Source: Haliotis rubra (taxonomy: Eukaryota). Taken from it: a stretch of DNA of 64,000 nt. A program made the translations under genes and the position numbers. The notes below the pieces were generated by a model, which ran no database searches, had not been told where the DNA came from, and was given only the letters and a program-made list of their open reading frames with translations. How positions within the stretch are numbered: position 1 is the first letter of the stretch; the number at the start of each line of letters is the position of its first letter. The stretch lies in assembly GCF_003918875.1 (NCBI RefSeq), contig NW_025767209.1, positions 186,001 through 250,000 on the forward strand. The letters run 5' to 3'. Below, in pieces: positions 6,001 to 45,468 of the stretch.

Positions 6001-8370
6001 TAGGTGGGGACTGTGAGCTTCATGTAGGTGGGGACTGTGAGTTTCATGTAGGTGGGGACTGTGAGCTTCATGTAGGTGGGGACTGTGAGCTTCATGTAGG
6101 TGGGGACTGTGAGCTTCATGTAGGTGGGGACTGTGAGCTTCATGTAGGTGGGGACTGTGAGCTTCATGTAGGTGGGGACTGTGAGCTTCATGTAGGTGGA
6201 GACTGTGAGCTTCATGTAGGTGGGGACTGTGAGCTTCATGTAGGTGGGGACTGTGAGCTTCATGTAGGTGGAGACTGTGAGCTTCATGTAGGTGGGGACT
6301 GTGAGCTTCATGTATGTGGAGACTGTGAGCTTCATGTAGGTATGGACTGTGAGCTTCATGTAGGTGGAGACTGTGAGCTTCATGTAGGTGGGAGACTGTG
6401 ACTGTGAGCTTCATGTAGGTGGAGACTGTGAGCTTCATGTAGGTGGGGACTGTGAGCTTCATGTAGGTGGAGACTGTGAGCTTCATGTAGGTGGGGACTG
6501 TGTGAGCTTCATGTAGGGTGTGGACTGTGAGCTTCATGTAGGTGGGGACTGTGAGCTTCATGTAGGTGGGGACTGTGAGCTTCATGTAGGTGGGGACTGT
6601 GAGCTTCATGTAGGTGGGGACTGTGAGCTTCATGTAGGTGGGGACTGTGAGCTTCATGTAGGTGGGGACTGTGAGCTTCATGTAGGTGTGGACTGTGAGC
6701 TTCATGTAGGTGGGGACTGTGAGCTTCATGTAGGTGGGGACTGTGAGCTTCATGTAGGTGGGGACTGTGAGCTTCATGTAGGTGGGGACTGTGAGCTTCA
6801 TGTAGGTGGGGACTGTGAGCTTCATGTAGGTGGGGACTGTGAGCTTCATGTAAGCGGAGACTGTGATTCGTGTAGGTGGGGACTGTGAGCTTCATGTAGG
6901 TGGGGACTGTGAGCTTGATGTAGGTGGAGACTGTGAGCTTCATGCAGGTTGGGGCTATGAACTTCATGTAGGTGTGAACTGTGAACTTAATGTAGGTGGG
7001 GACTGTGAACTTCAAGTAGGTTGACACTGTGAGCTTCATGTAGGTGGGGACTGTGAGCTTGATGTAGGTATGGGGCCAGTGAGGTGGAGACTATGACCTT
7101 CATGTAGGTGGGGACATTGAGCTTCATGTAGATGGAAACTGTGATATTCATGCAGGTGGGGACTGTGAACTTCATGTAGGAGGAGACTGTGAGCTTAATG
7201 TAGGTGGAGACTGTGAGCTTCATGCAGGTATGGACTATGAAATTCATGTACGTGTGGACTGTGAACTTCATGTCGGTGGGGACTGTGAGCTTCATGCAGG
7301 TGGGGACTGTGAGCTTCATGTAGATGGCGACTGTGAGCTTCATGTAGGTGGGGACAGTGAGCTTCATGTAGATGGAGATTGTGAGCTTCATGTAGGTGGG
7401 GACTGTGAGCTTCATGTAGGTTGGGACTGTGAGCTTCATGTAGATGGAGATTGTGAGCTTCATGTAGGTGGGGACTGTGAGCTGCATGTAGGTTGGGACT
7501 GTGAACTTCATGTTGGTGAAGACTATGAGCTTCATGTAGATGGAGACTGTGTTATTCATATAGGTGGAGACTATGACCTTCATGTAGGTGGGGACAGTGA
7601 GCCTCATCTAAGTGGAGACTGTGAGGTTCATGTAGGTGGAGACTGTCAGCTTCATGAAGGTGGAGACTGTGAGCTTCATGTAGGTGGAGACTGACCTTCA
7701 TGTAGATGGAGACTGTGTGATTCATGTAGGTGGGTACACTGAGCTTCATGTAGGTGGGGACACTGAGCTTCATGTAGGTGGGGACTGTGAACTTCATGTT
7801 GATGGAGGCTGTGTGATTCATGTAGGTGGGGACTGTGAGCTTCATGTAGATGGAGACTGTGAGGTTCATGTAGGTGGAGACTGTGAGCTTCATGAAAGTG
7901 GAGACTGTGAGCTTCATGTAGGTGGAGACTGACCTTCATGTAGATGGAGACTGTGTGATTCATGTAGGTGGGTACACTGAGCTTCATGTAGGTGGGGACT
8001 GTGAACTTCATGTTGATGGAGGCTGTGTGATTCATGTAGGTGGGGACTGTGAGCTTCATGTAGATGGAGACTGTGTGATTCATGTAGGAGGACACTGAGA
8101 GCTTCATGTAGATGGAGACTGTGTGATTCATGTAGATGTGGACTGTGAGCTTCATGTAATTTGGGACTGTGATCTTCATGTAGGTGGGGACAATGAGTTT
8201 CATGTATGTGGAGACTGTCAGCTTCATGTAGGTGGGGACTTTGAGCTTCATGTAGGTGGGGACTGTGAGCTTCATGTAGGTGGGGACTGTGAGCTTCATG
8301 TAGGTGGTGAATGTGTGCTTCACGTAGAAGGGGACTGTGAATTGTTATGTGGATGGGGACTGTGTGCTTT
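1..8370. repeat. 24-bp tandem satellite (GTGAGCTTCATGTAGGTGGGGACT)n, continuing off the 5' edge of the window
   Basis: The unit is directly visible, with several hundred copies. The 8-aa periodic ORFs (CELHVGGD / MKLTVPTY / HEAHSPHL) are translations of the unit. Copies degenerate beyond ~6850. Confidence 0.98.
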
Positions 8371-19641: not shown

Positions 19642-22487
19642 TAAATGTAAACTTAGCATGTCCAGGCCATTTTTTAATATAACTAAATCAATATTCTTCC
19701 TCTGTTTTATTATTCATTATTATTTATGGAACTGTAAATACCGTCATTTCTTAACCTCCACTGGTCACGTGCAATTTTCCTGACCCAAATTTTGAGAAAA
19801 CATGTCCAAGTATCTTTGGCATTAACTGATAAAATTAAAAAGCACAAATATGATACATGTTCATTCTCTTTATTGCAGCTTTCAACTGCCCCAAAAACGT
19901 GGGCAATGATTTTAAAAGTGACAAAGTGTGAGGTTATAATTGTGATTACAATCATCTTTCTCTTTGCAATAGTCATAACATCCAACAATGTTCAATAGTT
20001 TTATGGGGGATGAATTGATGTGTGGAACTATAATTCAACAATTATTATGCACAAAAAAGGACTTTTTTTATAAAATAGGCTATTTCAAAGACGAGTAAAT
20101 GTTAAAAAAAAACCACTTTGTTCTCCATAGTTCAAATTACACTTACAACTGGAATGGGAAATACTGCATTTATTTAATCTTTGTCTGTTTTTAAAGTAAA
20201 TGGTTATTATGAACAAACAAAAAATAATAAACATTTAATGAGACAGAATGACTCAAGCTGTGAATGATTATCGCTTGAGACTGTGGTAGATATCTGCATT
20301 TAAAACATACGCAAGAACATATTGGTATATATAACATATATAGAATATAGATAAGGCATCATGAGAAAAAAATATGAAATATTTTCAATAGTGATGTTAT
20401 ATGATATCTGCATTTGTCTTTCAACCATCTAAGAAGTGTTGAAACAACTACTAGTGTGCTAAATCATAACACAAACCAAATTAAAGCATCAGGCGTAGCT
20501 TCTGTATTTCTTCTGATTTCAGAGGTACATCGCTGAGTCAATGGCCCTGAAAAAAAAGGAAAAGAAAAACCATGAATAATTACTTCTTTTTTCATGCCTT
20601 AAAGAAAACCATTTATTCTTTTATTGCAGACGGATATTAATTTTATATTAATTTGATTTAGAATAAATAGATATTCCTGATATTTCGTCTACGAATGGTT
20701 TTGGGATGTTGAATGCGTTTGAAATATTACAATACATTACATATCTTTTGAATGATTACAAATGTTAGTAAGAAATGGAAGCGAACTAGCATGTTCAACC
20801 AAAAAAAATGTTCAGCTACAGGTTAGTAGAAAAACAAAAGATGTAAAAGATAAACAGTTGGTTCATTAGGTTAACTGACCAAAAGTAAAGAAAACAACAA
20901 CATTTTTTGCAAGTTTCTTCACAGTTTCCATTTCCAGTTCTTGTTGAAAACTTTTCTCTGGAGCAACTACGTCGTTTTCAGCAATAGTTGGGACATCGAA
21001 AATTTCATTTCTGTAATTTTGTTTCTTTTGACCACGGTTTTTCCTATCACACGCCAGTGTTCAGTATATTTTCCGAGCGAGGGCATGTTCAACCTGACTA
21101 GCCTACAAACCCAATCAGAAAGAACTGTTCTTTTCAAACTGTTACAACTTTGAATTCTACACAATTCTAACACTAAGCCATTCTGAATAACTCCACTCGA
21201 AAGTTTTTCGATATTTCTTAAAAAAAAAAACTCAGGCTGGAGTCCAAACTTCCATAAAATTCATAAACATGACTGATGAAAAGTTTGACTGACTAACTAC
21301 AATTGAGTGTTTGGATAACAGTTTCGATGTCGATGGTGTTCTGCATTGATGTGATTAGCTCCCTGGTGATCAGGGTTTGTGTGGAGACATCTTTGCATGT
21401 AGTCACTTCCTGTTCTTCTTGTACTTCTTCTAAATCCTGGTCAGGAAGGGGTTTGTTGTCTTCCCCTCCCCAGAGGGAATAGGCCTCTGCTCTCATGTCC
21501 ACAATGGTAGTATCAGAGTCATCTGCCCTTTGTTATTCTTCGTGTATTCCAACATTTTCAGTTCAGGTTCATAATCCTTGACCAGTTCAACTTGTGTAAT
21601 TCCGGGACAAGCCGAATGACGACTCGTGCCCCTCTAGAATGATTTCATATTGGCGTATGAACATCAGAACTACTATACACAAGAACGGTAACTCTATCCC
21701 CCTTTGATTAAAATGTTTCTTAATATCATCGAAGCACTGGTACATAGTATTGCTGTTGTTTTGGGTGTTTTTTGTTTGTTTGTTTTTTTATTTTTGTTGT
21801 TTTTTTTTACTTATTTATTTTTAAGAATTAAACCTCTTTGATACAACTAAAAGAAGGAGAGAAACATATTTGCTAAAGACATATTCTTATGTAATTATTA
21901 CCAGCTGTTCACCTTATATTTCCAATTATATTAGTTTTCTAAATAGGGTTTAATATTCACTTATAGGAATTGTTTTGTTGAATATACAAACTGAACACCC
22001 GTGTAACCTTGCTGTCACACCCCTGGTGGAATTTTAAATGAATTCGCTGAAAGACATATGAATGACAAAAACAAAGTGAGACTAAAATATCCCCAGAGAT
22101 GTGAAATATAAACCTGATGTTAAAGAATAATGTTGATTAGTTACATACAGATATAATATTATTGTTTTTAAACTCGTAGCGATTTACACATGTTGGAAGC
22201 GCACATACAATCTCCATAACAAGCCCGCAAGATCGTCAGAAATACACTCAATTAGACCCATGAGAGCCGTTATGTCAACAAACGCACGTGCGTGTATTTG
22301 AATCTCTCGCCGTCCATGTCACTATCCTTACTAAAATCTACACGAGGCAACATAGTTCTGTTAGCTTCATTCCTTGGGCTTTCAATATGACGATATATAT
22401 TTTAGAAGTTGGAAGATAGAACAAGTATATATGGCAGGCAGCTTCTTTAAGTATAGAACACGACGTTTCGAACACGACGCTGTTAAA

Positions 22488-24860: not shown

Positions 24861-25189
24861 CGTATTAATAATAATATTGTTAAATTTTCGAATATAGCAT
24901 TTTACTCACATTAATCAAATTTCGCATTAAATTACTTACAATTAAATAAATTTTCACATTGAGTTAACAAATCGTTTGCATTGAATATAGTATTTTCAGG
25001 AAAGTATCTAAAGTAACTATCGGATTCATAAAATTAGCTGGGTTTTGGGGGGGGGTGTTGTTTCAAATATTATGTGTGTGATATACTGATAGTGTGAGAA
25101 AAAGGCTGTGCACTTCTTGATATAAATTTGAATGCCTCATGGGATTTTGAGGTCTTGAGGAATGGCCAACATGACTGATTGCCAAGTTC

Positions 25190-25320
25190 GTGTTTAGTTT
25201 TTAGCAATATTCCATCAATATCACGACGGGGGTCACACGTTGTACCCATGTGGGGAGTCGAACACGGGTCTTCAGCGAGACGAACGAACACTTTAACCAC
25301 TTGGCTACCCCGGCGCCCAA
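25190..25320 (-). mobile_element. tRNA-derived SINE (family A)
   Basis: Reverse complement reads ggtagccaagtggttaaagtgttcgttcgtctcgctgaagacccgtgttcgactccccacatggg (A-box and B-box), followed by the shared gatatt...gaatattgctaaaa tail. Confidence 0.8.
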
Positions 25321-25564
25321 CCTTAACAACAGAGGAGTGTGTGAAAAACCAAAGACTGTTGGTTGTATCTGTGTAACGGATGCCTTGATTAAGTGACATG
25401 TCATACTATTAGCAAAAGCCTTAATCACTGAAGCATTGATGACCGTGTAAACATCTTGTTGGCTGACCGGGACCATCATAAGGCACAGCTGGATCTGTCG
25501 ACGATGTATCTAAACATTATCTAGTCTCCTTGTGTTCGGACAACAGGGTTCGACCGCATAAATA

Positions 25565-26630
25565 TATACCATTAAAAAAAAGAAACGCATAACCCAGAAA
25601 TTTGTTGCGAAAATGTTGTATTTTCAAAAATGTATAACCCGTCCACAAACAGACTTCAGGAAATGATTTTTTGCATCAGCTTAGAAGAAGGAAATGTCTA
25701 TACAACCAAGTGGATAATTTTACATAACGGAGACACTGAGCGCCATGGTGGCGACGTAGCACGGACCCGACGTCGGGTCTCCTGGCTCTCAGTCCAATCT
25801 CTCTCAACCCGTTCCGTACAGCTTGATCGGATATCCTCCGAAGTCCAGGCACCCTAGCTGCTGTGCTCTCACCCGTGGCAGTACGATCAAGCAGATGTAG
25901 TACCTGGATGTACCGATCTTGGACTACAGTGGTGACTCGAGGTCTGCCTGTACGGGGAGGGTCATTTGTTATACCTGTTTGGTTGTAAAGAGTTGTAAGC
26001 CGTGATATCGTGCTCAGACTAACATTCAAACGCCTGGCAACAGACGATTGGTAATCTCCAGCGTGTAATCTTCCAATGGTGATGTTCTGTGTCGCAGCGT
26101 CAAGACGTGGCGTAGTGATTTGACCTTGCAACTCCTTCAAAACGAATGCCGATTTCCGAAAGTAATCTGGATTTTTATAACTTCTTTGAGTGGCATATTA
26201 GAAGTTGGGAAGTACAATATAGAACAAACTTTATGGATAATAACTTTTTATGCAACGTTTCGATATAGATTCTTGTACCGTTGACAACGGTACAAGAATC
26301 TGTAATCGGAACGTCGCACTCACGAATAAAAAGAAGTTGTTATCCATAAAGTTTGTTCTATATTGGATTTTTATAGCCAAACAGTGCATGCTTTTTGCTA
26401 CACAATTTAAACTGGAAAGAGATTTCTGTTAGGTTGTGGTGACGCCTTTTTAATCTTTGTAAGAAATCTCATCAGAATCAGTATTTTCAGGTAAAGTCGA
26501 TTTTTTGGGGTGTAAAATCATGTTATCAACATTTTTGTTACATATTTTGACGATTGTTTGAACACAATAGGCAATTAATAGATTTTAAAGAATACAAAAC
26601 GCCTATGCGTTTCTTTTTTGGGATAGTATA
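25565..26630 (-). mobile_element. Tc1/mariner DNA transposon relic, internally deleted
   Basis: Imperfect TIRs (tac.at..aaaaaagaaacgcata / tatgcgtttcttttttgggatagta) flanked by TA. ORF 25676-26140 encodes the paired HTH region and the GRPR motif; the DDE domain is missing. Confidence 0.85.
26180..26363. mobile_element. Palindromic insertion (Penelope-like remnant or MITE) with a 12-bp target-site duplication
   Basis: TGGATTTTTATA at 26168-26179 and 26364-26375. Nested inverted arms caatatagaacaaactttatggataa / ttatccataaagtttgttctatattg and agattcttgtaccgttg / caacggtacaagaatct. Confidence 0.65.
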
Positions 26631-26778
26631 TATTCCCATGTTGTCAGTATGTCTGAGTCTCTGTCTGATAGTTGCTAGTTTTCCACCGACCCCACTACAG
26701 TTTCAGCATTAGCTGAGTACGAAACGACATATTTTACATGAATTCATCATGAAAACTTTAATTGAATTGGTATTGACG

Positions 26779-26985
26779 AACCCGTGAAGATCCGGGTAAG
26801 AATTGATCTTTAACAAACAGGGATCAGATTGTCAAGATCGCTGACCTAGTTGATGCATGTCATCGTATCCCAGTTGTGTAGATCGATGTCCATGCTGTTG
26901 ATCACTGGATTGTCTGGTCCAGACACGATTATTTACTGACCGTCGCCGTATAGCTGGAATATTGCTTAGTGCGGCGTTAAACAAC
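26779..26985 (+). mobile_element. SINE (family B, MESC/Meta-like core), partially deleted
   Basis: acccgtgaagatccgggtaagaattgatc...gtcatcgtatcccagttg...ggattgtctggtccagac...gctggaatattgc, shared with copies at 27958, 39505, 46750 and 63075. Confidence 0.75.
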
Positions 26986-27087
26986 ATATTTGACATGAAT
27001 TTAAAAAAAAAATAATTTAAAAGGCAATATAAAACGCAGAACCAGAGTCAGGTGACGCCACATTTATTGCATGGTCGGGCTGTGTCT

Positions 27088-27164
27088 TTATTTTCCAGAC
27101 ACTACACATCCCCAGCAGAACAGGCACCATCCACCCCACCATCTCTTAGACCGGTTCCTCACAG
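27088..27164 (-). CDS. BRICHOS gene exon 6 (AVRNRSKR-WWGGWCLFCWGCVVSGK*)
   Basis: ttcgcttccacag| acceptor in phase 1, stop TAA at 27090-27088, poly(A) signals downstream. Confidence 0.85.
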
Positions 27165-30100
27165 CTGTGGAAGCGAATAATTGGTTTTTGTATTAGTGAT
27201 TAAACCTGATAAAAATATCGCTGTATCTCTACATCAACACAGCTGTGTACTTTACGGAAGCCGTTTTGGGCCACTCTGGTTGGGTTTTGAGGACATTAAA
27301 AATTTATTTTGAAATTTCAAGATGATGATCTTCAAATTTTAAAATCTTATCTTGACATTTAAAGATCATTGTCTTGAAATTTAAACTTTATGTGAATCTC
27401 GAAATTTCATTTTAGCATCTTCAAATATCAACCTTGGTATTCTTTTCGATATTACTTACAGATGAAGTTGAAAACTTACCACCTCTTTTCGCGGTTACTC
27501 TCGGGACATCTGAAATAGCAATTGTTTACTTGACTACAGCATTTGCATCGTGTAAGCCAGATAAGATTAAAATAACCAGATGACATAAGGATTATTGACG
27601 TCCAGCTGAGTATTGCATATGATCAACCATGACTACGCATCCAATACATATTTAATCTCGTACTCTTGACATATTTGGCTCGTTTCGAAAGGTCGAGAAA
27701 GGACCTCCTGATAGCTCATAGTTTTGTGTGGTGCGCAACGATGACAACCGCTCACCTGCAGCAGCCCTGATCACTTTGCCGTCTTGGAGGAGATGCACTT
27801 TGCAGCCGCTACAGAACTTTGCTATCCTCTTTCCCACTTTCTGTTCGATCTCTTCTGCAGGTAATGGCGTTTTGGGAACGACCCACTCTTCAGTAGCTTG
27901 AACCTTTGGTGCTTTCTCTCCCTGCATGGTGAACACAGGATGAACAGAATGATAGGTTGAGTGAGTGAGTTTAGTTTTACTCCACACTCAGCAATATTCC
28001 AGTTACATGGCGGCGGTCTGTGAAACATCAAGTCTGGACCAGACAATCCTGTGATCAACATCATCGATCCACGCAACTGGGATACGATGACATGTGTCAG
28101 CCAAGTCAGCGAGCCTGACCACCCGATCCCGTTAGTCGCCTCTTATGACAAGCATGGGTTACTGAAGATCAATTCCAAGAAAGAAAGAAAAAGTGTCAGC
28201 GAAAATGGAATAAAATAATGAAAAGCCTCAGTTGCAATATGCATCAGCTGTTAATGTGACACACCTTTTCGATGTTGTCTACGACCTTCTTAATGTCGTC
28301 GTATGTCTCGTCAGATGGCTTCACAAAACAAGTATTTTTTTCGGTGATCTTCATAGCCACTAAGCCCTGCAAAATATACATGAAATAGACGTTTAACTGG
28401 CATATGTCAGATATTTAATACTGTCTCTGAATTTCAAATTTGTTTCCATAATTTATGTTCAGTTTGTTGCAACAATCTTCACCGATTCTCTATCCTACTA
28501 ACCAAGATGTTATTCAATTCCTTGCGCCCCCCTGAACGACCTCATGTAGATGGGTAGCAGCTATCAAATATGTCATCACCCATATACATCACGATGTATG
28601 TTTCTTTGAGAGAGTTATAATTTTAAGTAAGCGTTGTTTCAGCCATGCAGTGACAAGAACAATTTTATTTTTACACATAATATTAATTTAAGCGATTTCT
28701 GTTTAAAACACGCTACAACATGAACTTTGCCACGTCGCTAGCTACCATTGAGCACTTATTTCAGATGCATATATACCTTTGTAAAGTCATGGTAGTTGAT
28801 TATATACAACAATTCAAAACACGTTAAGGCAGCTGAAGGCCTTGGCTAGGTCACTAGCTGGAGATCATGGAGCACTTATTTCAGATGCATATGTACCTTT
28901 GTAAAGTCATGGAACTTCACTATTTGTAAAGTCATGGCAGTTGAGTATTTGTAAAGTCATGGCAGTTGAGTATTTGTAAAGTCATGGTAGTTGACTACCG
29001 TTTAAACCACACAAAGGCAGCCTGACCTTTATACGGAGCATATATTTCAGATGCACGTGTACCTTTGTAAAGTCATGGTAGTTGATTGACTTCTTGAAGC
29101 ATTTTTGAGGCGGGTCAGGTGTTCCTGGGTAGGTTATCATACTGTTGTCGTGCAGCTCGATGTCCATAGGGATGACCTCTCCATTCCCGGGTGTCACGGC
29201 ACCGTGAGCAAACTATAATATAGAGAGATTGTCCTCAGTATACCGTGATTAGAAGTACAAAGTCTTGATCTAAGATATAACCTTGATTTGAACATACCAT
29301 GATATAACGAATACCATTTTTCCTCACATGCCAAACACGTCTGAAAGTTTGGCATGGCTACAATTCACTTCCTAAACTGTGATGATCACGTGGAAAATAA
29401 CGTACAGTATCGTGAGCACACTGGACAATAACGTACATTATCGTGAGCACACTGAACAATAACGTACTGTACCGTGAGCACTCTGGACAATAACGTACAT
29501 TATCGTGAGCACACTGGCCATTAACGTACATTATCGTGAGCACACTGCACAATAACGTACTATTTCGTGAGCACACTGGACAATAACGTACAGCATCTTG
29601 AGCACACTGGACATTAACATACTGTGTCGTGAGCATATTGGACAATAACGTTCTGTACCGTGAGCACACTGGACAATGACGTACAATATATTGAGCACAC
29701 TGGACAATAAAGTTCTCTATCGTGAGCACACTGGACATTAACATACAGTATCTTGAGCACACTGGGCAATAACGTACAGTATCGTGAGCACACAGGACAA
29801 TAACGTACATCATATTCATCACACTGGACAATGACGTACAGTATCTTGAGCACACTGGACAATAACGTACAATATCTTGAGCACACTGGACAATAACGTA
29901 CAGAATCGTAAGCACACTGGACAATAGCGTACAATATCATGAGCACACTGGACAATAACGTACAGTATCTTGATCACACTGGACACTAGCGTACAGTATC
30001 GTGAGCACACTGGACAATAACGTACAGAATCGTGAGCACACTGCACAATAACGTACGGTATCATGAGCACACTGGACAATAACGTACAGTATCATAAGCA

Positions 30101-33100
30101 CACTAGACAATTAAGCACAGCAGCGCGAGCACATTGGACAATATCGTACAGTATCTAGAGCACACTGGACAATAACGTACTGTATCGTGAGCACACTGCG
30201 CAATAACGTACAGTATCGTGAGCACACTGTACAGCATCGTACAATATGTTTAGCACACTGGACAATAAAGCACTGTATCGGAGCACACTGGGCAATAACG
30301 TACAGTATCGTGAGCACACTGTACAGCATCGTACAGTATGTTTAGCACAATGGACAGTACAGCATAGTATCGGAGCACACTGGACAAAAACGTACAGTAT
30401 CGTGAGCACACTGGACAGTAAAGCACAGTATCGGAGCACACTGAACAATAAAGCACTGTATCGTGAGCACACTGGACAATAACGTACGGTATCGTGAGCA
30501 CACTGGACAATAACGTACAGTATCATAAGCACACTAGACAATTAAGCACAGCAGCGCGAGCACATTGGACAATATCGTACAGTATCTAGAGCACACTGGA
30601 CAATAACGTACTGTATCGTGAGCACACTGGGCAATAACGTACAGTATCGTGAGCACACTGTACAGCATCGTACAGTATGTTTAGCACACTGGACAATAAA
30701 GCACTGTATCGGAGCACACTGGGCAATAACGTGCAGTATCGTGAGCACACTGTACAGCATCGTACAGTATGTTTAGCACACTGGACAATAAAGCACTGTG
30801 TCGTAGCACACTGGACAATTACGTACAGTATCTTGAGCACACTGGACAGTAAAGCACAGTATCGGAGCACACTGGACAAAAACGTACAGTATCGTGAGCA
30901 CACTGGACAGTAAAGCACAGTATCGGAGCACACTGAACAATAAAGCACTGTATCGGACGGAGCAGACTGGACAAAAACGTACAGTATCGTGAGCACACTG
31001 GACATTAACGTCCAGTATCGTGAGCACACTGGACAATAACGTACAGTATCTTGAGCACACTGGACAGTAAAGCACAGTATCGTGAGCACACTGGACAATA
31101 ACGTGCAGTATCGTGAGCACACTGGACAATAGCGTACAGTATCCTGAGCACACTAGACAATAACGTACAGTGTCTTGAGCACACTGTACAATAACGTAAA
31201 GCATCGTGAGCACACTGGACAATAACGGAAAGAATTGGGAGCACACTGGACAATAGCGTACAGTATCGTGAGCACACTGGAAAGTAAAGCACAGTATTGT
31301 GAGCACACTGGACAATAACGTACATTATCTTAAGCAGACTGGACAATAAGGTACTCTATCGTGAGCACACTGGCCATTAACGGACAGTATCGTGAGCACA
31401 CTGGACTATAACGTAAAGTATCTTGAGCACACAGGACACTAAAGCACAGTGTCTTGAGCACACTGGACAATAACGTACTGTATCTTGGTCACATTGGACA
31501 ATAAAGCACACTATCGTGAGCACAGTGGACAATAAAGCACTGTATCTTCAGCACACTGGACAATAACGTACGAAATCGTGAGCACACTGGACAATAACGT
31601 ACTGTATCGAGAGCACATTGGACAATATCGAAAAGAATCGTAAGCACACTGGACAATAAAGCACAGTATCGTGAGCACACTGTACAACATCGTACAGTAT
31701 CTTTAGCACAGTGGACAATAACGTGCAGTATCGTGAGCACACTGTACAATAAAGTACTGTATCGTGAGCACACTGGGTAATAACGTACAGTATCGTGAGC
31801 GCACTGGACAATAGCGAACAGTATCTTGGGTACACTGGACAATAACGTAAAGCATCGTGAGCACACTGGCGAATAAAGCACAGTATCGTGAGCACACTGG
31901 ACAATAACGTTCAGTATCGTGAGCACACTGGACAATAAAGCACAGTATCGTGAGCACACTGGACAATAACGTACAGTATCTTGAGCCCACTGGACAATAG
32001 TGTACAGTATCGTGAGCACACTGGACAAAAACGTACAGTATCGTGAGCACACTGGACAATAAAGCACTGTGTCGGAGCACACTGGACAATAACGTACAGT
32101 ATCGTGAGCACACTGGACAGTAAAGCACAGTATCGTGAGCACACTTGACAATAACGTGCAGTATCGTGTGCACACTGGACAATAACGTACAGTATCGTGA
32201 GCAAATTGGGCAATAACGTACAGTATCTTGAGCACACTGTACAATAACGTACAGCATCGTGATCACACTGGACAATAACGTACAGAATCGTGAGCACACT
32301 GGACAATAACGTACAGTATCGTGAGAACACTGGAAAGTAAAGCACAGTATTGTGAGCACACTGGACAATAACGTACATTATCTTAAGCACACTGGACAAT
32401 AAGGTACTCTCTCGTGAGCACACTGGCCATTAACGGACAGTATCCTGAGCACACTGGACAATGGCGTACAGTATCGTGAGCTCACTGGACAATAAAGCTC
32501 TATATCGTGAGCACACTGCACAATAACGTACTGTTCCGTGAGCACACTGGACATTAACGTTCAGAATCGTCAGAACACTGGACATTCAAGTACTGTATCG
32601 TGGGCACATTGGACAATAACGTTCTATATCCCGAACACACTGGACAATGACGTACAATATATTGAGCACACTGGACAATAACGTACAGTATCTTGAGCAC
32701 ACTGGACAGTAAAGCACAGTATCGTGAGCACACTGGAAATAAAGCTCAGTATCCTGAGCACACTGGACAATAACGTACAGTATCGTGAGCTGACTGGACA
32801 ATAACGTACAGAATTGTGAGCACACTGGACAATAGCGTACAGCATCGTGAGCACACTGGACAATAACATACAGTATCGTGAGCACACCGGACAGTAAAGC
32901 ACAGTATCGTGGGCACACTGGACAATAACGTACAGTATCCTCAGCACACTGGACAATAACGTACAGTATATTGAGCACACTGGACAATAAAACACAGTAT
33001 CGTGAGCACACTGGTCAATAACGAACAGTATCGTGAGCACACTGGACAATAACGTACAGTATCTTGAGCACACTAGCCAGTAAAGCACAGTATCGTGAGC

Positions 33101-36100
33101 ACACTGGACAATAAAGCACAGTATCCTGAGCACACTGGACAATAACGTACAGTATCCTGAGCACAGTGGACAATAACGTACAGTATCGTGAGCACACCGG
33201 ACAGTAAAGAACAGTATCGTGAACACACCGGACAATAACGTACTGTATCTTGGTCACATTGGACAATAACGTACAGTATCGTGAGAACACTGGACAATAA
33301 CGTACTGTATCGTGAGCACACTGGACATTAACGTACAGAATCTTGAGCACACTGGACAATATCGTAGAGTATATTGAGCACACTGGACAATAACATACAG
33401 TATGGTGAGTACAATGGGCAATAACGTACGCTATCTTGAACACTAGGGACAATAACGAACAACGTCGTGAGCACACTAGACAATAACGTACAATATCGTT
33501 AGCACACTGGACAATAACGTACAATAGCTTGAGCACACTGGACAATAACGTACTGTATCGTGAGCACACTGGACAATAACGTACAATATCTTGAGCACAC
33601 TGGACACTAACGTACATTATCGTGAGCACACAGGACAATATGGTACAATATCTTGAGCACACTGGACAATAACGTACAGTATCTTGAGCACACTGGACAA
33701 TAACGTACTGTATCTTGAGCACACTGGACAATAACGTACAGTATCCTGAGCACACTGAACAATAACGTACTGTATCTTGAGCACACTGGACAATAACGTA
33801 CAGTAACGTGAGCACACTGGACAATATGGTACAATATCTTGAGCACACTGGACAATAATGTTCAATATCCTGAGCACACTGGACAATAACGTACAGTATC
33901 TTGAACACACTGGACAATAACGTACAGTGTCATGAGCACACGGGACAATAACGTACAGTATCGTGAGCACACTTGACAATAACGTACAGTATGGTGAGCA
34001 CACTGGACAATAACGTACAGTATCGTGAGCACACTGTACAATAAAGTACTGTATCTTGAGCACACTGGGCAATAACGTACAGTATCGTTAGCACACTGTA
34101 CAATAACGTACAGTATCATGAGCACACTGGACAATAACGTACAGCATCGTGTTCACACTAGACAATAACGTACAATATCTTGAGCACACTGGACAATAAC
34201 GTACAGTATCGTGAGCACACTGGACAATAACGTACAGTATCCTGAGCACACTGAACAATAACGTACTGTATCGTGAGCACACTGGACAATCACGTACAAT
34301 ATCTTGAGCACACTGGGCAATAACGTACACTATCTTGAGCACACAGGACAGTAACGTACAGAATCGTGAGCACACTGGACAATAACGTACAATATCATGA
34401 GCACCCTCTATTACTACCTACAGCATACTGAGCACATTGGACAATAACCCATAGCATTCTGAAAACACTTAACTGTACTGTGTTTCACGAATTGGGGACG
34501 TATACCGATGGTTATATAGCCGCAAATTTAGTTATAACGGCGACGCGTAAACAGCGTTACCCCTTTAGTTTAGAGATACATTCAAAGGTTTTGGTGAATC
34601 GGTTTTCAATATGCTGATTATACGGTCAGAAATTTATAGCATTGACCTCAGAACTCGTGTTACATACTAAGTTGAATTAGAATAGAATATAACGTACAGG
34701 ATAGTGAGCACACTATGTTATTACCTACGGTCTACTGAGCACACTGGACAATAACGCACAGTATCATTTAGAAATAAGGTTAGTTGATTCACGCAAAACT
34801 GAAGTATAATGTATAGTGCTTTGAATGTCGTGGTACATTTAGAGTGAGTGAGTGAGTTATTATTTAACGTCACATCGGCAATATTTCAGCCATGTCGTGA
34901 CGAGAACATATGTGACATTGAAATGGAATAGATGTATATTATAAAAACCTGTCCACGAAGGACAGTAAAACAACTAGAATATCACAATTACAACTAAAAC
35001 TATTGTGGAAAATTAAACTGATAGCATTATTTGGACAATACAATATAAAAACTGGCTATAGATCGCCAACAACCGAAGGTAGATCACCAAACTAGGGACC
35101 ATGGGGACTTACATTACTTTTGCTATCTGCATGGACCCTAGTTGGATTTATATCATCCCTTCAGCCGCTGGCGATTGAAGTCAAATTTAGCCAAAATTAA
35201 AATGACAAGAATACTACATTTAAAACAGCTGGTAAATTTAAATTTCCTTTGAATGTTTCAGGACTTACGTACCCTCTCAGGAGGACAATAATTTTACGCT
35301 ACTTCAACCCCCTTTGAGGGTACAGCCACTAACAATCTCAGTTACTAATCTAAACTACCAATAATAAAATATATATCTATTTACAAATCAGTTAACAAGT
35401 CTAATTCTTTTTAAAATGCAATAATTAAATGAGAACTTATATTACTAAAAAGATCCTTCATAGTTTGTGATTTGAAATAGAAATCCCTTGTGATGGAATA
35501 TTCAACACAGTCAAGCAGGACATGATTGACCGTGATTCTTTCATCACAAGGGATACAAAACGGAGGATCCTCACCTTTTAATAAGTACTCATGAGTATGT
35601 CTAGTGTGGCCAATACGACATCGTCGTGTGATGACCTCTTCAAATCTGGACTGACAACCCAAGTAGGTGTAACCGATAGTTGGTTTTAGTGCATGTAATT
35701 TATTGATACCTACTTGGGTGTCCCACTTCTTTTGCATCAGATCACGGATATAACATCTAATAGCAGCTTTGTAATCAGAGTATGGGATCAGAGGTGGTGT
35801 CACAGATTTGTTGAGTGCTGCCTTATCAGCACGATCGGCCATTGTGTTCCCAGAAATGCCAACGTGGCTGGGTAACCAACAAAAGACGATGTCGTATTGG
35901 CCAGTAGCGAGCTCATTATACAATTCAATCATTTCAAATGAAAGTGGATGTTTACAAGAAAGATTCTTAAAAACCTGAGGACACGAAATAGAATCGGAAC
36001 ATATTATGTATTGTTTATATTTACGGTGTTTATTAATATATTTAAGAGCTGTTAATATGGCGTTTGCTTCTGCTGTGAAAATAGAGCTGTTATTTGGTAG

Positions 36101-36628
36101 TCGAAAGGATATTGTTCTGGATCCAATGACAGAGGGTACATTTAGAAATAAGGTTAGTTGATTCACAGGTAACTAAAGTAGAATGTGCAGCGCCCTGAAT
36201 GACACAGCTCATGTAGAAATAAGGTTAGTTGATTCACGGGTAACAAAAGTAGTGTTCTCGTCACTATATGGCTGGAATAATGCCGATGTGACGCAAAACC
36301 CAACTCAACCTCATTCCAACCTCAATCCAACTAAAGTAGAATGTACAGCGCCCTGAATGACACAGCTCATGTAGAAATAAGGTTAGTTGATTCACGGGTA
36401 CCTAAAGTAGAATGTACAGCGCCCTGAATGACACAGCTCATGTAGAAATAAGGTTAGTTGATTCACGGGTAACTAAAGTAGAATGTACAGCGCCCTGAAT
36501 GACACAGCTCATGTAGAAATAAGGTTAGTTGAAACACGGGTAACTAAAGTAGAATGTACAGCCCTTACCTCTGTTGTTCCGCTTGCTCCATGCAGAAGCA
36601 GTGCGACGAGAGTGGCCACAGCAAACAT
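27088..36628 (-). CDS. Secreted BRICHOS-domain prepropeptide, 194 aa, 6 coding exons (36628-36569, 29212-29063, 28366-28265, 27921-27756, 27509-27480, 27164-27088), with C-terminal peptide WWGGWCLFCWGCVVSGK after RSKR
   Basis: All five introns are GT-AG with consistent phases (0,0,0,1,1). The exons total 585 nt, an open frame ending in TAA. Signal peptide MFAVATLVALLLHGASG; BRICHOS hallmarks YHDFTKGLVAMK...TCFV...IAKFC...VHLL; furin site; AATAAA signals overlapping the stop and at 27063-27068. Confidence 0.88.
27480..27509 (-). CDS. BRICHOS gene exon 5, 30-nt micro-exon (DVPRVTAKRG)
   Basis: gctatttcag| ... GTG|GTAAGT, symmetric phase 1-1. Confidence 0.75.
27756..27921 (-). CDS. BRICHOS gene exon 4 (GEKAPK...IAKFCSGCKVHLLQDGKVIRAAA)
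   Basis: catgcag| ... CAG|GTGAGC, 166 nt, containing the second conserved BRICHOS Cys. Confidence 0.9.
27958..28177 (-). mobile_element. SINE family B (MESC/Meta-like core) in BRICHOS intron 3
   Basis: Reverse complement contains aattgatcttcagtaacccatgcttgtcataagaggcgactaacgggatcgggtggtcaggctcgctgac, with a (TCAC)n tail. Confidence 0.85.
28265..28366 (-). CDS. BRICHOS gene exon 3 (GLVAMKITEKNTCFVKPSDETYDDIKKVVDNIEK)
   Basis: ttttgcag| ... AAG|GTGTGT, 102 nt, containing the first conserved BRICHOS Cys. Confidence 0.9.
29063..29212 (-). CDS. BRICHOS gene exon 2 (FAHGAV...SINYHDFTK)
   Basis: tattatag| ... AAG|GTACAC, 150 nt, ending in the BRICHOS HDF motif. Confidence 0.88.
29390..34450. repeat. 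31-bp satellite (GAGCACACTGGACAATAACGTACAGTATCGT)n, about 160 copies, in BRICHOS intron 1
   Basis: Tandem units are directly visible. The Cys-rich ORFs here are frame-cycling translations of the unit. Confidence 0.97.
34844..36134 (-). mobile_element. 5'-truncated RNase H-bearing LINE (I/Nimb-like) with (TCAC)n tail and 12-bp TSD
   Basis: ORF 35411-36130 with SSIFTAEA, IICSDS, WLPSHVGISGNTMADRA and a C-terminal CxxC..H..C. TSD GGTACATTTAGA at 34832-34843 and 36135-36146. Confidence 0.9.
36142..36562. repeat. 71-bp tandem repeat (TAGAAATAAGGTTAGTTGATTCACGGGTAACTAAAGTAGAATGTACAGCGCCCTGAATGACACAGCTCATG), about 5 copies, plus a displaced unit at ~34768-34843
   Basis: Period 71 (36372, 36443, 36514). 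The array starts a few bases inside the intron-1 donor. Confidence 0.9.
36569..36628 (-). CDS. BRICHOS gene coding exon 1 (signal peptide MFAVATLVALLLHGASGTTE)
   Basis: ATG at 36628 and donor GAG|GTAAGG. The acceptor tattccctcag| at 36645 implies an upstream non-coding exon. Confidence 0.75.
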
Positions 36629-36869
36629 AGCGGCTCGCAAGTACCTGAGGGAATAATACTCGAATATTCTAAACAGGGATAGTCATTTATCAATATCTGA
36701 AATACGTTTGTATTTGTTTTGTTTGATTTTGTCAGTCCTTACATAACATACATGTAAGTACCGTTTCCCTGTCACTGTTTCCATGTTACGACGTTACTTT
36801 ACACCAAACACACCTTGTACCAATATCTCGCCACCCACTTTACGCAGTATAGATGTTAATCCCTACGGA

Positions 36870-37025
36870 GGCGCTAGGGTAGCCGAGTAGTTAAGCGTTA
36901 AGCGTCACCCCCGAAGATCCTGGTTCGATTCCCAACTTGAGTACAATGTGTAAAGCCCAGTTCTGGTATCCCCCGTTGTGATGTTGAGGGAATATTCCTT
37001 AAATATCCCCACTCACTCACTTACT
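36870..37025 (+). mobile_element. tRNA-derived SINE family A
   Basis: ggtagccgagtagttaagcg...cctggttcgattccc...gaatatt...actcactcac. Confidence 0.75.
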
Positions 37026-37899
37026 AATCCCTACCGGTGGAATGCCCTTATGTCAGGTTAACCCAGCATCCTACTGGTCCGGAGACGGGTTTTTGTGACA
37101 CGCTGTTACCTTGAAGTTGCCTTAGGTTTCTTTCATGGTAATGAAAATCCCTCGTATTTACAGTGTTCCAATAGTGCCGTCCACCCATAGTATTTAGTGG
37201 CAAGGAATGAGTTTAGTTTTACGCCGCTTTTAGCAATATTCCAGCAATATCACGGCGGATGAGTGAATGCTTTAGCCACTAGGCTACCCCACCGCCCCGA
37301 TTGAGTGAGAGACACTGCACACCACCGTCTTGCCATCAACTTAATGATCGACACCATACATCAACAAAGAAGGCAATTAAAACACTCAGAGTGACCTGTC
37401 TCAAATCTAATAATATCACATCATGCAGAAAATAGATTTTTTAAAATGTTTGAAAAATATACACACCAAAACATGTCTCTTCAGTGATCCCCACAGCTGG
37501 AACTGCTGTCCAGTCGAGTTCCTGACAAGCTTATAAACATGAACCAACACATGTTCGCACCTCAGTGTTAAAATATGACGTTTCACCTGCATCATACCTT
37601 CTGACCTTTGTCTGCATGTTTCTGACAGACACGGATTTAAATTATTTTACGATGAACATTAATCATGTCAGAATATGTGGATAATTAACACAGAGGTCAC
37701 AGTTTTGATCTCTTGCGATCTTCTGTCAGATAAACGTGAAGAACTTCAATACCAAATTTACAGTTTTATGATGTGATAGTTTGATTACAGTTTAACCAGG
37801 AGATGAGTGCATTAGTCGGGGAAACAGTTATTATTTTCAGGGAATGGTGGTAAACACGCTCAGTATGTACTTGTCATGATGAAGAACCTATGTGTACTA

Positions 37900-39322
37900 T
37901 ACTGAGTCAAAAAAGAAACTTCACATTCTTTCTTCAGGGCACTATAAAAGAACAAGAGATGGTAAGATGATTACCTTGATATTATTTCATTGCTGAGATC
38001 TGTGTGATGTACTCGATACACTGACAGTGCCATAATCAGTTCCATCAGCTACACCGCCGTTCCAAAACATGGGTATACAGAATGTCAAGTCACAAAAATA
38101 AAAATGCGAAATTTCTCAGTTCAATATCGTGTATGGCCGCCCCGCGCATTCACCACTGCCAAACACCGTCTCCTCATCGACTGTCTGATGCTTGTGAACA
38201 CGTGGTTGGGGATTCTGCGCCATTGCTCTTGCATCCCAAACGTGCTCTATTGGATTAAGGTCAGGGGACCTCGATGGCCAGTCCATGACGTTGATTCCAG
38301 CGTTTTGAAGGAAATTTCGTGTCAACATCGCGGTATGCGGCCGAGCATTATCATGCTGGAACTGCAGACCTGGGCCATGAGCAGCCATGAAAGGAACGAG
38401 TTCGGGGGTGAGCACCTGGTCGCGGTAAGCAGCAGCTGTGAGGTTTCCACGGATGACCAGACGTCGGGAACGGTTGTTCCCACAGAAAGCTCCCCACACC
38501 ATGCAACTTCCGCCCCCGAATCTGTCGACTTCCTGTACACAACATTGGGCATACCGTTCACGACGTCGTCTCCAGACTCTATGCCTGCCGTCCGCGAATC
38601 TGAGGGTAAACCTGGATTCATCGCTAAAGACAACTCGATTCCAGACTCTCTGGGTCCATCGGAGGTGACGTTGGGCCCACAGCAGACGTTGACGTTGATG
38701 AAACGGCGTCAATATTGGCCCACGATTTCGAATGGTCTGTGAGGACAGTCGACCTCTGACATTTCAGCCCTGGTTCGTGTAGCCGGCAGAAATCTGTCAC
38801 GTAGGTGACGTAGGACGATTTGACAGTCTTCTGCTCGTTACGTCACACGTGGACGACCCGACCTTGGGCGATCAGAAGTGGTGCCAGTTTGTTGTAGACG
38901 ACCTCGCAAGTCATACACATTACGACGGCTGCATCCCATTGCTCTTGCGACGTCAATAACTGATCTTCCCGCTTGCAACATGCCAACGGCACGTTCACGT
39001 TGCACATTTGACAATCGTGGCATTTCAAGTACCGTAAGAACTGTGGTTTAAAAGTATTTTTTCAATTCTTGAGACCAATGCAAACACGTGCATATGAAGA
39101 AAACTTCGATGCGAAGATCACATGATCGACTGCACGTGCAAAACCTGATTTGGCACTAACGTCATTTACACGACGAATAGATGGGTTTGAGTTGGTTTTG
39201 CAAACGTTTTTCTAGAATCGAAAGATAGGGATCCCATTTCGGATACATAGATGTATCATCAGAGAAAAATTATTCATTATTTTTCAAATTACATTTTGTG
39301 AACTTTCTTTTTTGACTCAGTA
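37900..39322 (-). mobile_element. Tc1/mariner transposon with TIRs and a frameshifted transposase (39023->38116)
   Basis: TA-flanked TIRs CTGAGTCAAAAAAGAAA / TTTCTTTTTTGACTCAG. Motifs MPRLS...GRPRVT, FSDESRF, QHDNARPH and WPSRSPDLNPIEHVW. There is a frameshift near 38838 and the C-terminus is disrupted. Confidence 0.93.
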
Positions 39323-39349
39323 TATATTGTGACCGTTTTCACTGTGGGG

Positions 39350-39742
39350 TGGTGGGGTAGCCTAGTGGTCAAAGCGTTCGCTCGTAACATCAAAGATCCA
39401 ATGTTCGAAGCCTATTTCTGGTGTCCCGCGCTGGAATATTGCTAAAGGCGGCGTAAAACTAAATTCACTCACTCACTCACTCACTCACTCACTCACTCGT
39501 TCTCACTGTACCCTTGAAGGGGGCGGAAAATCCCCGTTAAAATTGATCTTCAGTAACCCATGCTTGTCGGAAGAGGCAACTAATCGGATAGGGTGGTCAG
39601 GCTCACAGACTTGGCTGACACATGTCATCGTATCCAAATTGCGTTGATCGATGCCCATGCAGTTGATCACTCGATTATCTGGTCCAGACTCATTTTTAAC
39701 AGACCGCCACCATATAGCGGTGTGAAACAACCAACCAACCAT
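39350..39742 (+). mobile_element. Adjacent SINEs: family A (39350-39500, (TCAC)n tail) and family B (39505-39742)
   Basis: ggtagcctagtggtcaaagcgttcgctcg...; aattgatcttcagtaacccatgcttgtcggaagaggcaactaa... Confidence 0.8.
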
Positions 39743-43861: not shown

Positions 43862-45468
43862 AATAATAATAATAATAATGGATATTTTTAGCGCGCCATT
43901 TTCCACCCACTGATACATGCTCAAGGCGCTACATAAAAGCATACATACAATGCATACAGAGGATAAAATAGCAAAATAAGTATACATTGAAATTGATGAC
44001 AGAAAGATTGATTTTAGGGATAGGCTTTGGAAAAAAAGAAAGTCTTCAACTTAATTTTGAAAGTTTCCAATGTGGGAGACTGCTTTATGTGGAGAGGGAG
44101 AGAATTCCACAGAGTAGGACCAGCGTACTGGAAAGACCTCTTGCCAAAAGAAGAAAGGAGAACTTTGGGAACGGAGAGAAGACATTGGTCTTGAGATCTG
44201 AGAGTTCTGGTTGGGGAGTACACAGTGAGAAGTTCAGAGAGATATGAAGGAGCTTGATTATGCAAACATTTATACACAATGCAAAGAAGTTTGAAGTGAA
44301 TCCGGAACTTGATTGGAAGCCAGTGTAATGATGAGAGTACAGGGGTGATATGGTCTCGTTTAGTGGTAAGGGATATAATACGTGCTGCTGTATTTTGGAC
44401 TTTTTGTAGTTTATTGAGATGTCCGTTGGTGAGACCGTATAGAAGGCTATTACAGTAATCCAATCTGGATGTTACAAGGCATCTCACAAGAGTGTGGGCA
44501 CTTTCCATTGTGATGTGCTTCCTAATCGTCCCAATGAGTCTGAGGTGGTAATAGCAGGTATGACACAACTTATCTACATGCGAATCTAGAGACAGGCCCG
44601 AATCAATATAAGCACCAAGATCTTTTATCAAAGCTGACGGTGTGATGTTAGCTGAACCAATCTTCACACTATCGATGTTAAATTTCTCCAAGCTCTTTGG
44701 TTTCCCAACAAGGAGAACCTCTGTTTTAGTGTCATTCAGTATTAGTTTTCTGCCCGTCATCCATGTCTTGATTTCCAGAGTACAATTCTCAATCTCTTTC
44801 AACGTTGATTGGGCATTATTTGGTCTGAACTTTGTCAGGAGTTGGTTGTCATCTGCATAGGAAAAGTGTGGTATTAAAAATTTGTCACTGATCAGAGAGA
44901 GTTGGTTGATGTAAATCAGGAAGAGCACTGGGCCTAGAACAGATCCCTGTGGAACTCCACATGACAGAGTAATCTTCTGTGAGATGCTGCCCAACACTGT
45001 GACTGACTGGTGTCTAGCAGACAGGTATGAAGAGAACCAGGCCAGTGCTTGTCCGCCGATTCCAGAGTGATTTTCAAGAGTATGGAGAAGAATCTTGTGG
45101 TCCACAGTGTCAAATGCCGCACTCAGATCTAAGAGTGTCAGAATTGCCACGTCACCTCTATCAACCAGGCATCTTAGGTCATTTACCACTCTAAGAAGGA
45201 GAGTTTCGGTAGAGTGGTGTGGACGGTAAGCTGATTGGTACTCATCTAAGATGCTGTTGCTTGACAAGTGACCCATCAACCTCTTGGTAGCTGCTCTCTC
45301 GATAAGTTTGGAGAGAAAAGTCAGATTAGAAACGGGGCGGTAGTTTTTAAAGTCATTTTTGTCAAGTTTTGCATTTTTAACTAGTGGCATGATAACAGCA
45401 TCTTTTAGCATATGTGGAAAGATCCCAGATGACAGACTCTTGTTGATGATTTCCGTTAATGTCGGCCC
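43862..45468 (-). mobile_element. L2-clade LINE, 5'-truncated, with an intact RT C-terminal ORF (465 aa, 45411->44014)
   Basis: NYRPVSNL, LLDLSAAFDTVDH, GVPQGSVLGP, YADD, SRLDYCNSLL and LHWLPI motifs, followed by a 3' UTR with an (ATT)n tail. Confidence 0.95.

Follow-up and report, generated by a model that had tools for sequence, protein, structure and literature searches.

The stretch analyzed here, positions 27164 to 27088 on the reverse strand of a 64,000-nt piece of the Haliotis rubra genome (contig NW_025767209.1 of the RefSeq assembly GCF_003918875.1, positions 186,001 to 250,000; this whole piece is called the window below), is the terminal coding exon of the gene LOC124292387, and we regard the identity of the gene, the exon and the precursor, a BRICHOS proprotein, as almost certain. 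The exon ends a gene of an abalone-only family of small secreted BRICHOS proproteins with three old clades, and it is probable that the tail it encodes is a peptide released by processing. Peptides released from a BRICHOS precursor have so far been described in marine worms only; the abalone tail is probably such a peptide, and we read it as a new molluscan variant of the BRICHOS-linked secreted peptides. The elements of the terminal exon are as follows.

27088–27164, reverse strand: terminal coding exon, 77 nt, with the linker AVRN, a basic site, the peptide, an amidation-type signal and the stop codon
27142–27153, reverse strand: predicted proprotein-convertase site Arg-Ser-Lys-Arg, read from the codons
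27097–27141, reverse strand: predicted mature 15-mer WWGGWCLFCWGCVVS, which holds the family scaffold G-W-C-x-x-C-x-x-C
27088–27096, reverse strand: Gly-Lys-TAA, the C-terminal amidation-type signal and stop, read from the codons

The AG acceptor of this exon is at 27166–27165 (reverse strand), and the exon reads (A)VRNRSKR-WWGGWCLFCWGCVVSGK-TAA. An earlier note on this DNA, made from its letters, had described 17 residues with four Trp, four Gly and three Cys (CxxCxxC) ending in Gly-Lys-stop, and these counts are correct on the exon reading; the exon, numbered 6 in that note, is coding exon 7 in the RefSeq model. Eight further mapped genes, from four Haliotis species, have the same terminal exon, scaffold and stop position, and therefore the peptide exon is not a chance open reading frame (ORF). 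All nine proteins mapped to loci share one common exon plan, with the basic site and the tail always alone on the terminal exon, as the earlier note had proposed for this gene.

Relatives were identified in Haliotis only, both by phmmer with the 55-residue last BRICHOS exon against 1.84 billion representative sequences and by word searches, with a single sequence and with a profile, of 5.8 billion proteins; the shortness of the query (55 residues) and the word filter limited how sensitive these searches were. Family members are present in five species: H. rubra, H. rufescens, H. cracherodii, H. asinina and H. discus discus. The maximum-likelihood tree of the pro-region contains three paralogue clades (A, B and C), each of which includes both Australasian/tropical and North Pacific species, so the paralogues are older than the split of the sampled species. 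Their tails are listed below.

Clade A: RSKR-WWGGWCLFCWGCVVSGK (window copy)
Clade A: RSKR-WGGWCLFCWGCKTSGK
Clade A: KSKR-WGSWCVFCWGCKARGK
Clade A: KSKR-WGSWCAFCWGCKAVGK
Clade A: KSKRRGSWCLFCWGCRVGGK
Clade B: LTKR-GGWCFLCFGCAAVGR
Clade B: LAKR-GGWCLFCFWCAAVGR
Clade B: MKR-GGCILCWSCNNKKRSL
Clade C: ..KRKIAGDGWCVLCIKCKITI
Clade C: ..ARAANGWCLFCLKCKVSA (unannotated exon of H. cracherodii)

The scaffold G-W-C-x-x-C-x-x-C lies near the C-terminus in all three clades and in nearly all intact copies, and this tail is kept across the clades although synonymous sites are saturated. Lys-Arg stands ahead of the scaffold in all intact clade A and most clade B sequences; the terminal Gly-Lys/Arg-stop is found in six of seven clade A genes, two of four clade B genes and neither of the two clade C genes. 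The number of residues after the basic site varies from 17 to 25 among family members. In the comparison of orthologues, which the earlier note had named as a possible refutation and which did not refute its proposal, Lys-Arg, CxxCxxC and the terminal Gly-Lys/Arg-stop were recovered in three sequences each of H. rubra and H. cracherodii and in H. rufescens and H. discus discus.

The comparison of dN/dS between the peptide and the pro-region, also suggested earlier, was made with Nei-Gojobori estimates relative to the window copy, the numbers being too small for a formal test. In the pro-region dN is 0.09–0.17 and dS is 0.5–0.85 (dN/dS 0.11–0.33); in the 17 codons of the peptide dN is 0.25–0.33 and dN/dS, where calculable, is about 0.4–0.5, with Cys, Trp and Gly fixed. 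The linker before the basic site is the least conserved part (dN 0.47–0.86). Hence the tail evolves faster than BRICHOS around fixed Cys, Trp and Gly, which would fit a pattern typical of effector peptides.

The precursor contains a BRICHOS domain with a BRICHOS fold. The RefSeq protein XP_046585425.1 (P0016; isoform X2 of LOC124292387, 202 aa) matches Pfam BRICHOS (PF04089) at residues 73–155 (profile positions 8–90 of 91) with 33.5 bits against a gathering cut-off of 25 (E=5e-8), so that the domain named in the earlier note is real, and four relatives score 33.6–39.7 bits. These matches needed full-length proteins, since among single exons only a 34-residue one gave a weak BRICHOS match (E=0.045). 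No domain besides BRICHOS was found by Pfam in the full-length proteins. Ten family members share an invariant Asp75 (in HDF), Cys91 and Cys149, which fall within the Pfam span or at its margin and are candidates for the conserved Asp and two Cys of BRICHOS domains. The AlphaFold model, built on a 10-row alignment, has a helix (residues 2–22), beta strands (28–56), the BRICHOS core (approximately residues 70–160, with a predicted local distance difference test score, pLDDT, of 80–93) and a low-confidence hydrophobic tail. The hydrophobic N-terminus, linker, BRICHOS domain and C-terminal beta-prone region that make up the architecture of the BRICHOS family are all present.

Structure comparison with VIA-align gave moderate scores for the BRICHOS domains of proSP-C (2yad_A, Z 4.6, root-mean-square deviation 3.8 Å, 70 of 77 residues aligned) and Bri2 (8rnu_A, Z 4.1). 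In the ESM Atlas the model matched a molluscan BRICHOS cluster with a template-modelling (TM) score of 0.55 and an "Integral membrane protein 2" cluster with TM 0.58 over 150 residues. Foldseek against PDB returned only noise and no BRICHOS match, and no BRICHOS chain was found by a sequence profile search of PDB; the tail alone had no usable match in the ESM Atlas and none in Pfam. As a separate observation, the best PDB hits of model residues 25–159, which cover the N-terminal strands and BRICHOS (Z 5.1–5.4, below the trustworthy level), were the bacterial lipoprotein carriers LolA and LolB, and one ESM Atlas row was named as a metazoan "LolA-like" domain; the idea of a carrier of hydrophobic cargo is suggestive, with scores too low to be trusted.

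The gene model agrees with the existing annotation. A word search with the last BRICHOS exon, followed by a cluster look-up, led to XP_046585425.1, and LOC124292387 is thus already annotated, though only as an "uncharacterized protein". Window positions 25088–39474 match the RefSeq locus in every letter, which corresponds to QXJH01000516.1 of GCA_003918875.1, and the NCBI coding sequence spans 27088–37474 of the window. The model spliced from the window has 194 residues, with AG/GT borders at all exons and consistent phases; XP_046585425.1 equals this model plus eight N-terminal residues (MFWYLRAA) that come from a further 5' exon at 37474–37467. Joining this exon to 36644 reproduces MFWYLRAAMFAV of the RefSeq protein. 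The remaining features of the gene, from 5' to 3', are the following.

37467–37474, reverse strand: first coding exon, ATGTTTTG followed by a GT donor, which puts MFW.. ahead of the signal peptide
36569–36644, reverse strand: signal-peptide exon, ..YLRAA MFAVATLVALLLHGASG TTE, with an alternative ATG at 36628
29063–29212, reverse strand: pro-region exon, 150 nt, phase 0, ending in ..INYHDFTK, with the invariant Asp75 and Cys66
28265–28366, reverse strand: central BRICHOS exon, 102 nt, with the invariant Cys91; the exon that alone matches Pfam BRICHOS (E=0.045)
27756–27921, reverse strand: BRICHOS C-terminal exon, 166 nt, with ..IAKFCSGC.. (invariant Cys149), ending in ..VIRAAA
27480–27509, reverse strand: cassette microexon, 30 nt, encoding (D)VPRVTAKRG, present in isoform X2 and absent from X3
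27087–27092, reverse strand: AATAAA hexamer that overlaps the stop codon (the second of two)
27063–27068, reverse strand: AATAAA polyadenylation hexamer, 20 nt past the stop

The predicted signal peptide, judged by eye, has a hydrophobic core and a small-residue end, ASG. The 30-nt microexon is kept in seven of the nine mapped family genes; it is skipped in isoform X3 (P0015), and isoform X1 (P0007) runs past its donor and ends without the peptide exon. The part of isoform X1 past the microexon donor (27355–27479) lacks an "intron" of about 35 nt (27397–27432). DNA contigs and presumed RNA contigs from other individuals all break at 27396/27433, and thus the mini-intron may be a 36-bp indel polymorphism; isoform X1 itself may be an intron-retention artefact. 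H. asinina and the H. rubra copies all keep the AATAAA hexamer at 27063–27068.

Splicing was analyzed by comparing contigs of public sequencing runs with window positions 26800–29400 (runs X1 and X3 from organism A, run X5 from organism B, and X6, a DNA run). A high-depth contig of run X1 (484 nt, depth 147), with a counterpart in X3, joins 29214/29062 to 28365/28264 and to 27920/27756; these joints are the predicted junctions of the three BRICHOS-region exons, and the skipped parts end in GT..AG. The pro-region exon is joined to the central BRICHOS exon exactly at 29063/28366; the joint between the central and the last BRICHOS exons (28265/27921) was observed in runs X1, X3 and X5, and none of these exon joints is present in the contigs of the DNA run X6. 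The high-depth contig ends 3 nt beyond the last BRICHOS exon, which is probably the branch at the cassette exon. A 241-nt contig of run X5 consists of the last BRICHOS exon, 35 letters (the microexon and 5 nt, and therefore fitting microexon inclusion) and 27159–27068, and it reaches the polyadenylation hexamer. This contig shares two substitutions (Val to Lys and Val to Thr) and the loss of one Trp codon with P0019, the product of a sister gene; hence it is the homologous peptide exon of the sister that is spliced to BRICHOS exons in a transcript-like contig. When the peptide exon alone was used as a word query, 2–3 of its 10 words were found in the presumed RNA runs.

The predicted products of the family have 13–15 residues and a net side-chain charge (Lys+Arg minus Asp+Glu) of 0 to +2, that of the window 15-mer being 0. 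Accordingly, the description "almost no charge" in the earlier note holds for the window copy and two others but not for the sister copies, which carry +1 to +2, whereas the odd number of cysteines and the hydrophobic Trp-rich character, also pointed out there, are traits of the family. The Wimley-White interfacial energy of the predicted peptides ranges from −4 to −9.5 kcal/mol, with the window copy the most extreme (about −9.5). Having three cysteines, each peptide can form at most one internal disulfide; the remaining thiol could then form a dimer or a mixed disulfide or bind a metal. The codons at 27127–27138 encode W-G-G-W; WGGW/WGSW matches the W-x-x-W consensus of Trp C-mannosylation and would be a putative site of it. 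Some orthologues have Arg in place of the first Trp of this site or lack that Trp altogether.

Convertase cleavage, carboxypeptidase trimming and amidation at Gly are general processing steps, and the order of signals in the precursor suggests how they would apply here. After removal of the signal peptide, the BRICHOS domain would shield the very hydrophobic, beta-prone tail during its secretory transit; a kexin-type convertase would cleave after Lys-Arg, an enzyme of the carboxypeptidase E/D type would trim the final Lys, and peptidylglycine alpha-amidating monooxygenase would turn the exposed Gly into an amide. The product would be WWGGWCLFCWGCVVS-NH2, the sister genes would yield versions of 13–14 residues, and WGGWCLFCWGCKTS-NH2 is a further predicted amidated product. 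Judged from these signals, release and amidation of the tail peptide are likely. The likeliest role would be that of a secreted effector active at the membrane interface, lacking the strong cationic charge of the annelid peptides. By analogy with the latter, host defence is the leading candidate for its function, although we would sooner doubt than assert it.

Several observations weigh against a released, amidated peptide. The furin site RxKR of the earlier note is present in the window copy as RSKR, but the P4 Arg (R-X-K/R-R) is not conserved among orthologues, where only the dibasic KR is kept: the sites are RSKR in H. rubra, RAKR in H. asinina, KSKR in H. rufescens, H. cracherodii and H. 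discus, and LTKR or LAKR in clade B of H. cracherodii. The orthologue comparison was also negative for clade C, H. asinina and two decaying copies, which lack the amidation signal or the stop; the signal is missing in clade C, in P0012 and P0009 of H. asinina and in P0014 of H. rufescens. Antimicrobial peptides do not typically have a net charge as low as 0 to +2. In the AlphaFold model, residues 165–202 have pLDDT below 50 and the tail is not placed, so docking of the tail on the BRICHOS domain cannot be inferred from it. At the transcript level, the depth of the window copy's peptide exon in the runs of organism A is 3.8 compared to 147 for the BRICHOS exons; expression of the peptide exon of the window allele therefore rests on the RefSeq models and the sister copy. 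The peptide exon of the exact window copy was not seen joined in the organism A runs, and the RNA nature of runs X1, X3 and X5 is a guess of the tool.

The tail might never be released and instead form the hydrophobic, Cys-bearing end of a secreted BRICHOS protein, KR and GK having no processing meaning, an explanation that we find unlikely yet worth serious attention. Such a tail could serve as an intramolecular client or lid, as an oligomerisation or membrane-attachment tail, or as a disulfide tether to the pro-domain. That the sole element universal to the three clades is GWCxxCxxC, and not the processing signals, speaks for retention, as does the presence of three pro-domain cysteines together with three tail cysteines in clade C and in P0012, where a disulfide between tail and domain is allowed because the total number of cysteines is even. 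However, in eight genes of four species Lys-Arg is positioned 0–2 residues ahead of the scaffold and Gly-Lys/Arg-stop after it despite variable neighbours, and conservation is lowest in the linker that leads up to the site, as it would be in a spacer. A different reading of the tail, as a glycosylphosphatidylinositol or membrane anchor, was rejected, since basic residues stand ahead of the hydrophobic stretch and its length is insufficient.

A dibasic site followed by C-terminal amidation is the classical signature of prohormones, and the released peptide could be a signal (a neuropeptide, hormone or pheromone) and not a defence effector. The conservation of KR and of Gly-Lys/Arg-stop agrees with this, and the H. 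cracherodii sites LTKR and LAKR, having no P4 Arg, resemble sites of prohormone convertases. Still, we judge a signalling role improbable: the multi-copy family with decaying copies and variable residues between the cysteines fits effector families better, the extreme hydrophobicity and the free thiol speak against a signal, literature searches gave no link between such a peptide and signalling in abalone, and we know of no neuropeptide that comes from a BRICHOS precursor.

The function could also lie in the metal or redox chemistry of CxxCxxC, through Cu(I), Zn or an exchange of thiols and disulfides, which would be compatible with either release or retention. Three invariant cysteines with fixed spacing and an odd count in every clade are consistent with this by analogy, CxxC motifs being familiar from such sites. 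Nevertheless, no homology to a metal-binding family was found, with nothing for the tail in Pfam or the ESM Atlas, and the flanking invariant Trp and Gly are atypical of metal sites; we hold this explanation to be scarcely probable.

It is very improbable that the product is the longer cationic 26-mer GAVRNRSKRWWGG.., cut only at the upstream AKR, which the earlier note had offered as an alternative. The AKR is indeed present in the window copy if the microexon is included, but it is encoded in the 30-nt cassette exon that is skipped in isoform X3 and in isoform X2 of the sister gene; the orthologous microexon reads ..RQGK in the North Pacific species (H. rufescens, H. cracherodii and H. discus), and the conserved site is the KR adjoining the scaffold. 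Finally, the chance that the peptide exon is a random ORF or an annotation artefact without coding function, for which only its short length speaks, is negligible, as exon, phase, scaffold and stop are kept across species, a spliced contig reaches the homologous exon and the RefSeq models include it. The ORFs on the plus strand over the same bases were left without support.

BRICHOS domains are studied mainly as anti-amyloid chaperones in human disease (proSP-C and Bri2) and, in invertebrates, as the pro-domain of antimicrobial peptides of worms. According to a review, BRICHOS antimicrobial peptides are known from polychaetes only (PMC9756803). Our literature searches (BRICHOS with Haliotis or molluscs, LECT1/chondromodulin with abalone, and the peptide motif) returned general reviews and no description of the abalone family or peptide. 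The polychaete precursors (arenicins, alvinellacin, capitellacin, nicomicins and HfBRI) have the same order of signal peptide, BRICHOS domain, basic site and short C-terminal Cys-containing peptide as the abalone protein, the same size (about 200 residues), and peptides in which scaffold residues are fixed and other residues are variable. BRICHOS-related peptide precursors have dibasic cleavage in common, and some, such as that of nicomicin-1, carry a cargo of extreme hydrophobicity that is prone to aggregate (PMC6265681), which is a further likeness to the abalone tail. The two groups differ in charge, the polychaete peptides being strongly positive and the abalone ones 0 to +2, so that a cationic amphipathic mature peptide as in annelids is not seen in the window copy or in clades A and B. 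They also differ in cysteines: the polychaete peptides have two, four or eight, and thus paired, cysteines, whose disulfides stabilise a hairpin or loop, whereas in all abalone clades there are three (CxxCxxC), in a Trp-rich peptide with an amidation-type signal. No sequence homology between abalone and annelid precursors was detected by the phmmer and word searches described above, with their limited sensitivity. Given the low charge and the odd number of cysteines that are predicted, the mechanism would differ from that of arenicin-type peptides.

In ITM2B/Bri2, from which furin releases Bri23, BRICHOS is likewise followed by a convertase site and a short C-terminal Cys-containing peptide. 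Bri2, however, has a longer linker and is inserted as a type II membrane protein, whereas the abalone protein has a short signal-type N-terminus, and no sequence similarity between them was found beyond the Pfam domain; Bri23 has two cysteines and is neither Trp-rich nor amidated. ProSP-C resembles the abalone protein in that BRICHOS protects a beta-prone peptide of extreme hydrophobicity within its own precursor, but this cargo is an N-terminal transmembrane helix, vertebrate-specific and of other chemistry, and not a C-terminal tail. Chondromodulin-1/LECT1 also has BRICHOS and is cleaved at a basic site that precedes a Cys-containing C-terminal part; its long C-terminal cysteine-rich domain is absent from the abalone protein, which has a 17-residue tail and only BRICHOS in Pfam. 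The cDNA-derived H. discus discus homologue ACZ15981.1 carries the name "leukocyte cell derived chemotaxin 1-like", which reflects BRICHOS similarity only and is misleading. Among short Trp-rich peptides, those of the indolicidin and tritrpticin types have 13–15 residues, 3–4 Trp, a blocked C-terminus and strong partitioning into the membrane interface, as predicted for the abalone peptides, but the indolicidin type is strongly cationic and without Cys. Gramicidin A, a neutral, non-ribosomal peptide with D-residues, is a distant functional analogy; there is no homology to any of them.

Tentatively, and with more doubt than confidence, we propose that the abalone peptides form an undescribed class of BRICHOS-chaperoned effectors, the first outside annelids: neutral or weakly cationic Trp-rich amides of 13–15 residues built on G-W-C-x-x-C-x-x-C with an obligatory odd cysteine, kept soluble by BRICHOS, which would act as disulfide dimers or as thiol- or metal-reactive agents at the membrane interface and not as cationic pore-formers. 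If the tail is such a peptide, BRICHOS-linked peptide biogenesis would reach molluscs with an almost uncharged, Trp/Cys-rich, odd-cysteine, amidation-type cargo, and a new family of defence effectors would be of applied interest, as abalone are farmed and suffer from infectious disease. What BRICHOS domains guard against could be studied in this family as a naturally occurring case, and the tail is a small, easily made peptide scaffold for tests of membrane, redox and metal activity.

Several family members differ from the common plan. The sister gene LOC124257861 (locus L001, QXJH01000677.1:319334-354356) is colinear with window positions 19700–41800 over about 27 kb at approximately 92% identity (90–96%), and between the two H. 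rubra copies there are 12 non-synonymous and two synonymous changes as well as one codon of difference; the two regions are either very divergent haplotigs or the result of a recent (segmental) duplication. A gene of an SLC1A/SDF-family transporter lies beyond the 3' side of the sister gene. LOC124292404 (H. rubra, L009:15330-15521), about 450 kb off on the same contig, is a decaying paralogue with an acceptor changed from AG to AA and with 3-nt and 5-nt deletions and many substitutions confined to the peptide-coding core; its divergence is focal on the peptide, since the flanking intron and the 3' untranslated region are about 95% identical. The clade A gene P0009 of H. asinina (L004:16291-16539) has lost G-K-stop by a 6-nt deletion; its annotated frame passes the conserved AATAAA and goes on for about 60 codons, as would be expected of a non-stop or degenerating copy. 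In P0014 of H. rufescens the first Cys is shifted and a long extension is present. The clade C gene P0011 of H. cracherodii has an unannotated terminal exon (L011:15052-15147), about 390 nt past its last BRICHOS exon, that encodes ..ARAANGWCLFCLKCKVSA-stop; the annotated 3' end differs from it and is probably wrong.

The surroundings of the exon in the window are repeat-rich. Two copies of a very high-copy element resembling short interspersed elements flank the 3' exons in opposite orientations (26850–26990 and 27958–28175); contig depths for this element reach the millions for DNA and the tens of thousands for presumed RNA. On the reverse strand, at 28778–28987 in the downstream intron, the exon-end motif CCATGACTTTACAAA recurs in five extra copies, two of them followed by the donor-like GGTA; these are local duplications of the exon 3' end and might act as decoy or alternative donors. 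A 5-kb minisatellite with a period of 31 nt (29380–34470; 78% self-match at lag 31) makes up most of the large intron and yields long spurious Cys-rich ORFs, and the array at the same place in the sister locus is longer (about 9 kb). Positions 1–8000 differ from the rest of the window both in GC content (about 0.52, compared to about 0.4) and in GC skew (about +0.5, compared to near 0), and are probably a strand-biased G-rich satellite. Transposon relics, identified from ORF translations only, are present on the reverse strand at 35414–36172, 38119–38763, 44017–45468 and 25676–26140, and include an RNase H-like piece in the large intron, ORFs of Tc1/mariner-type transposases and a reverse-transcriptase ORF of 484 residues.

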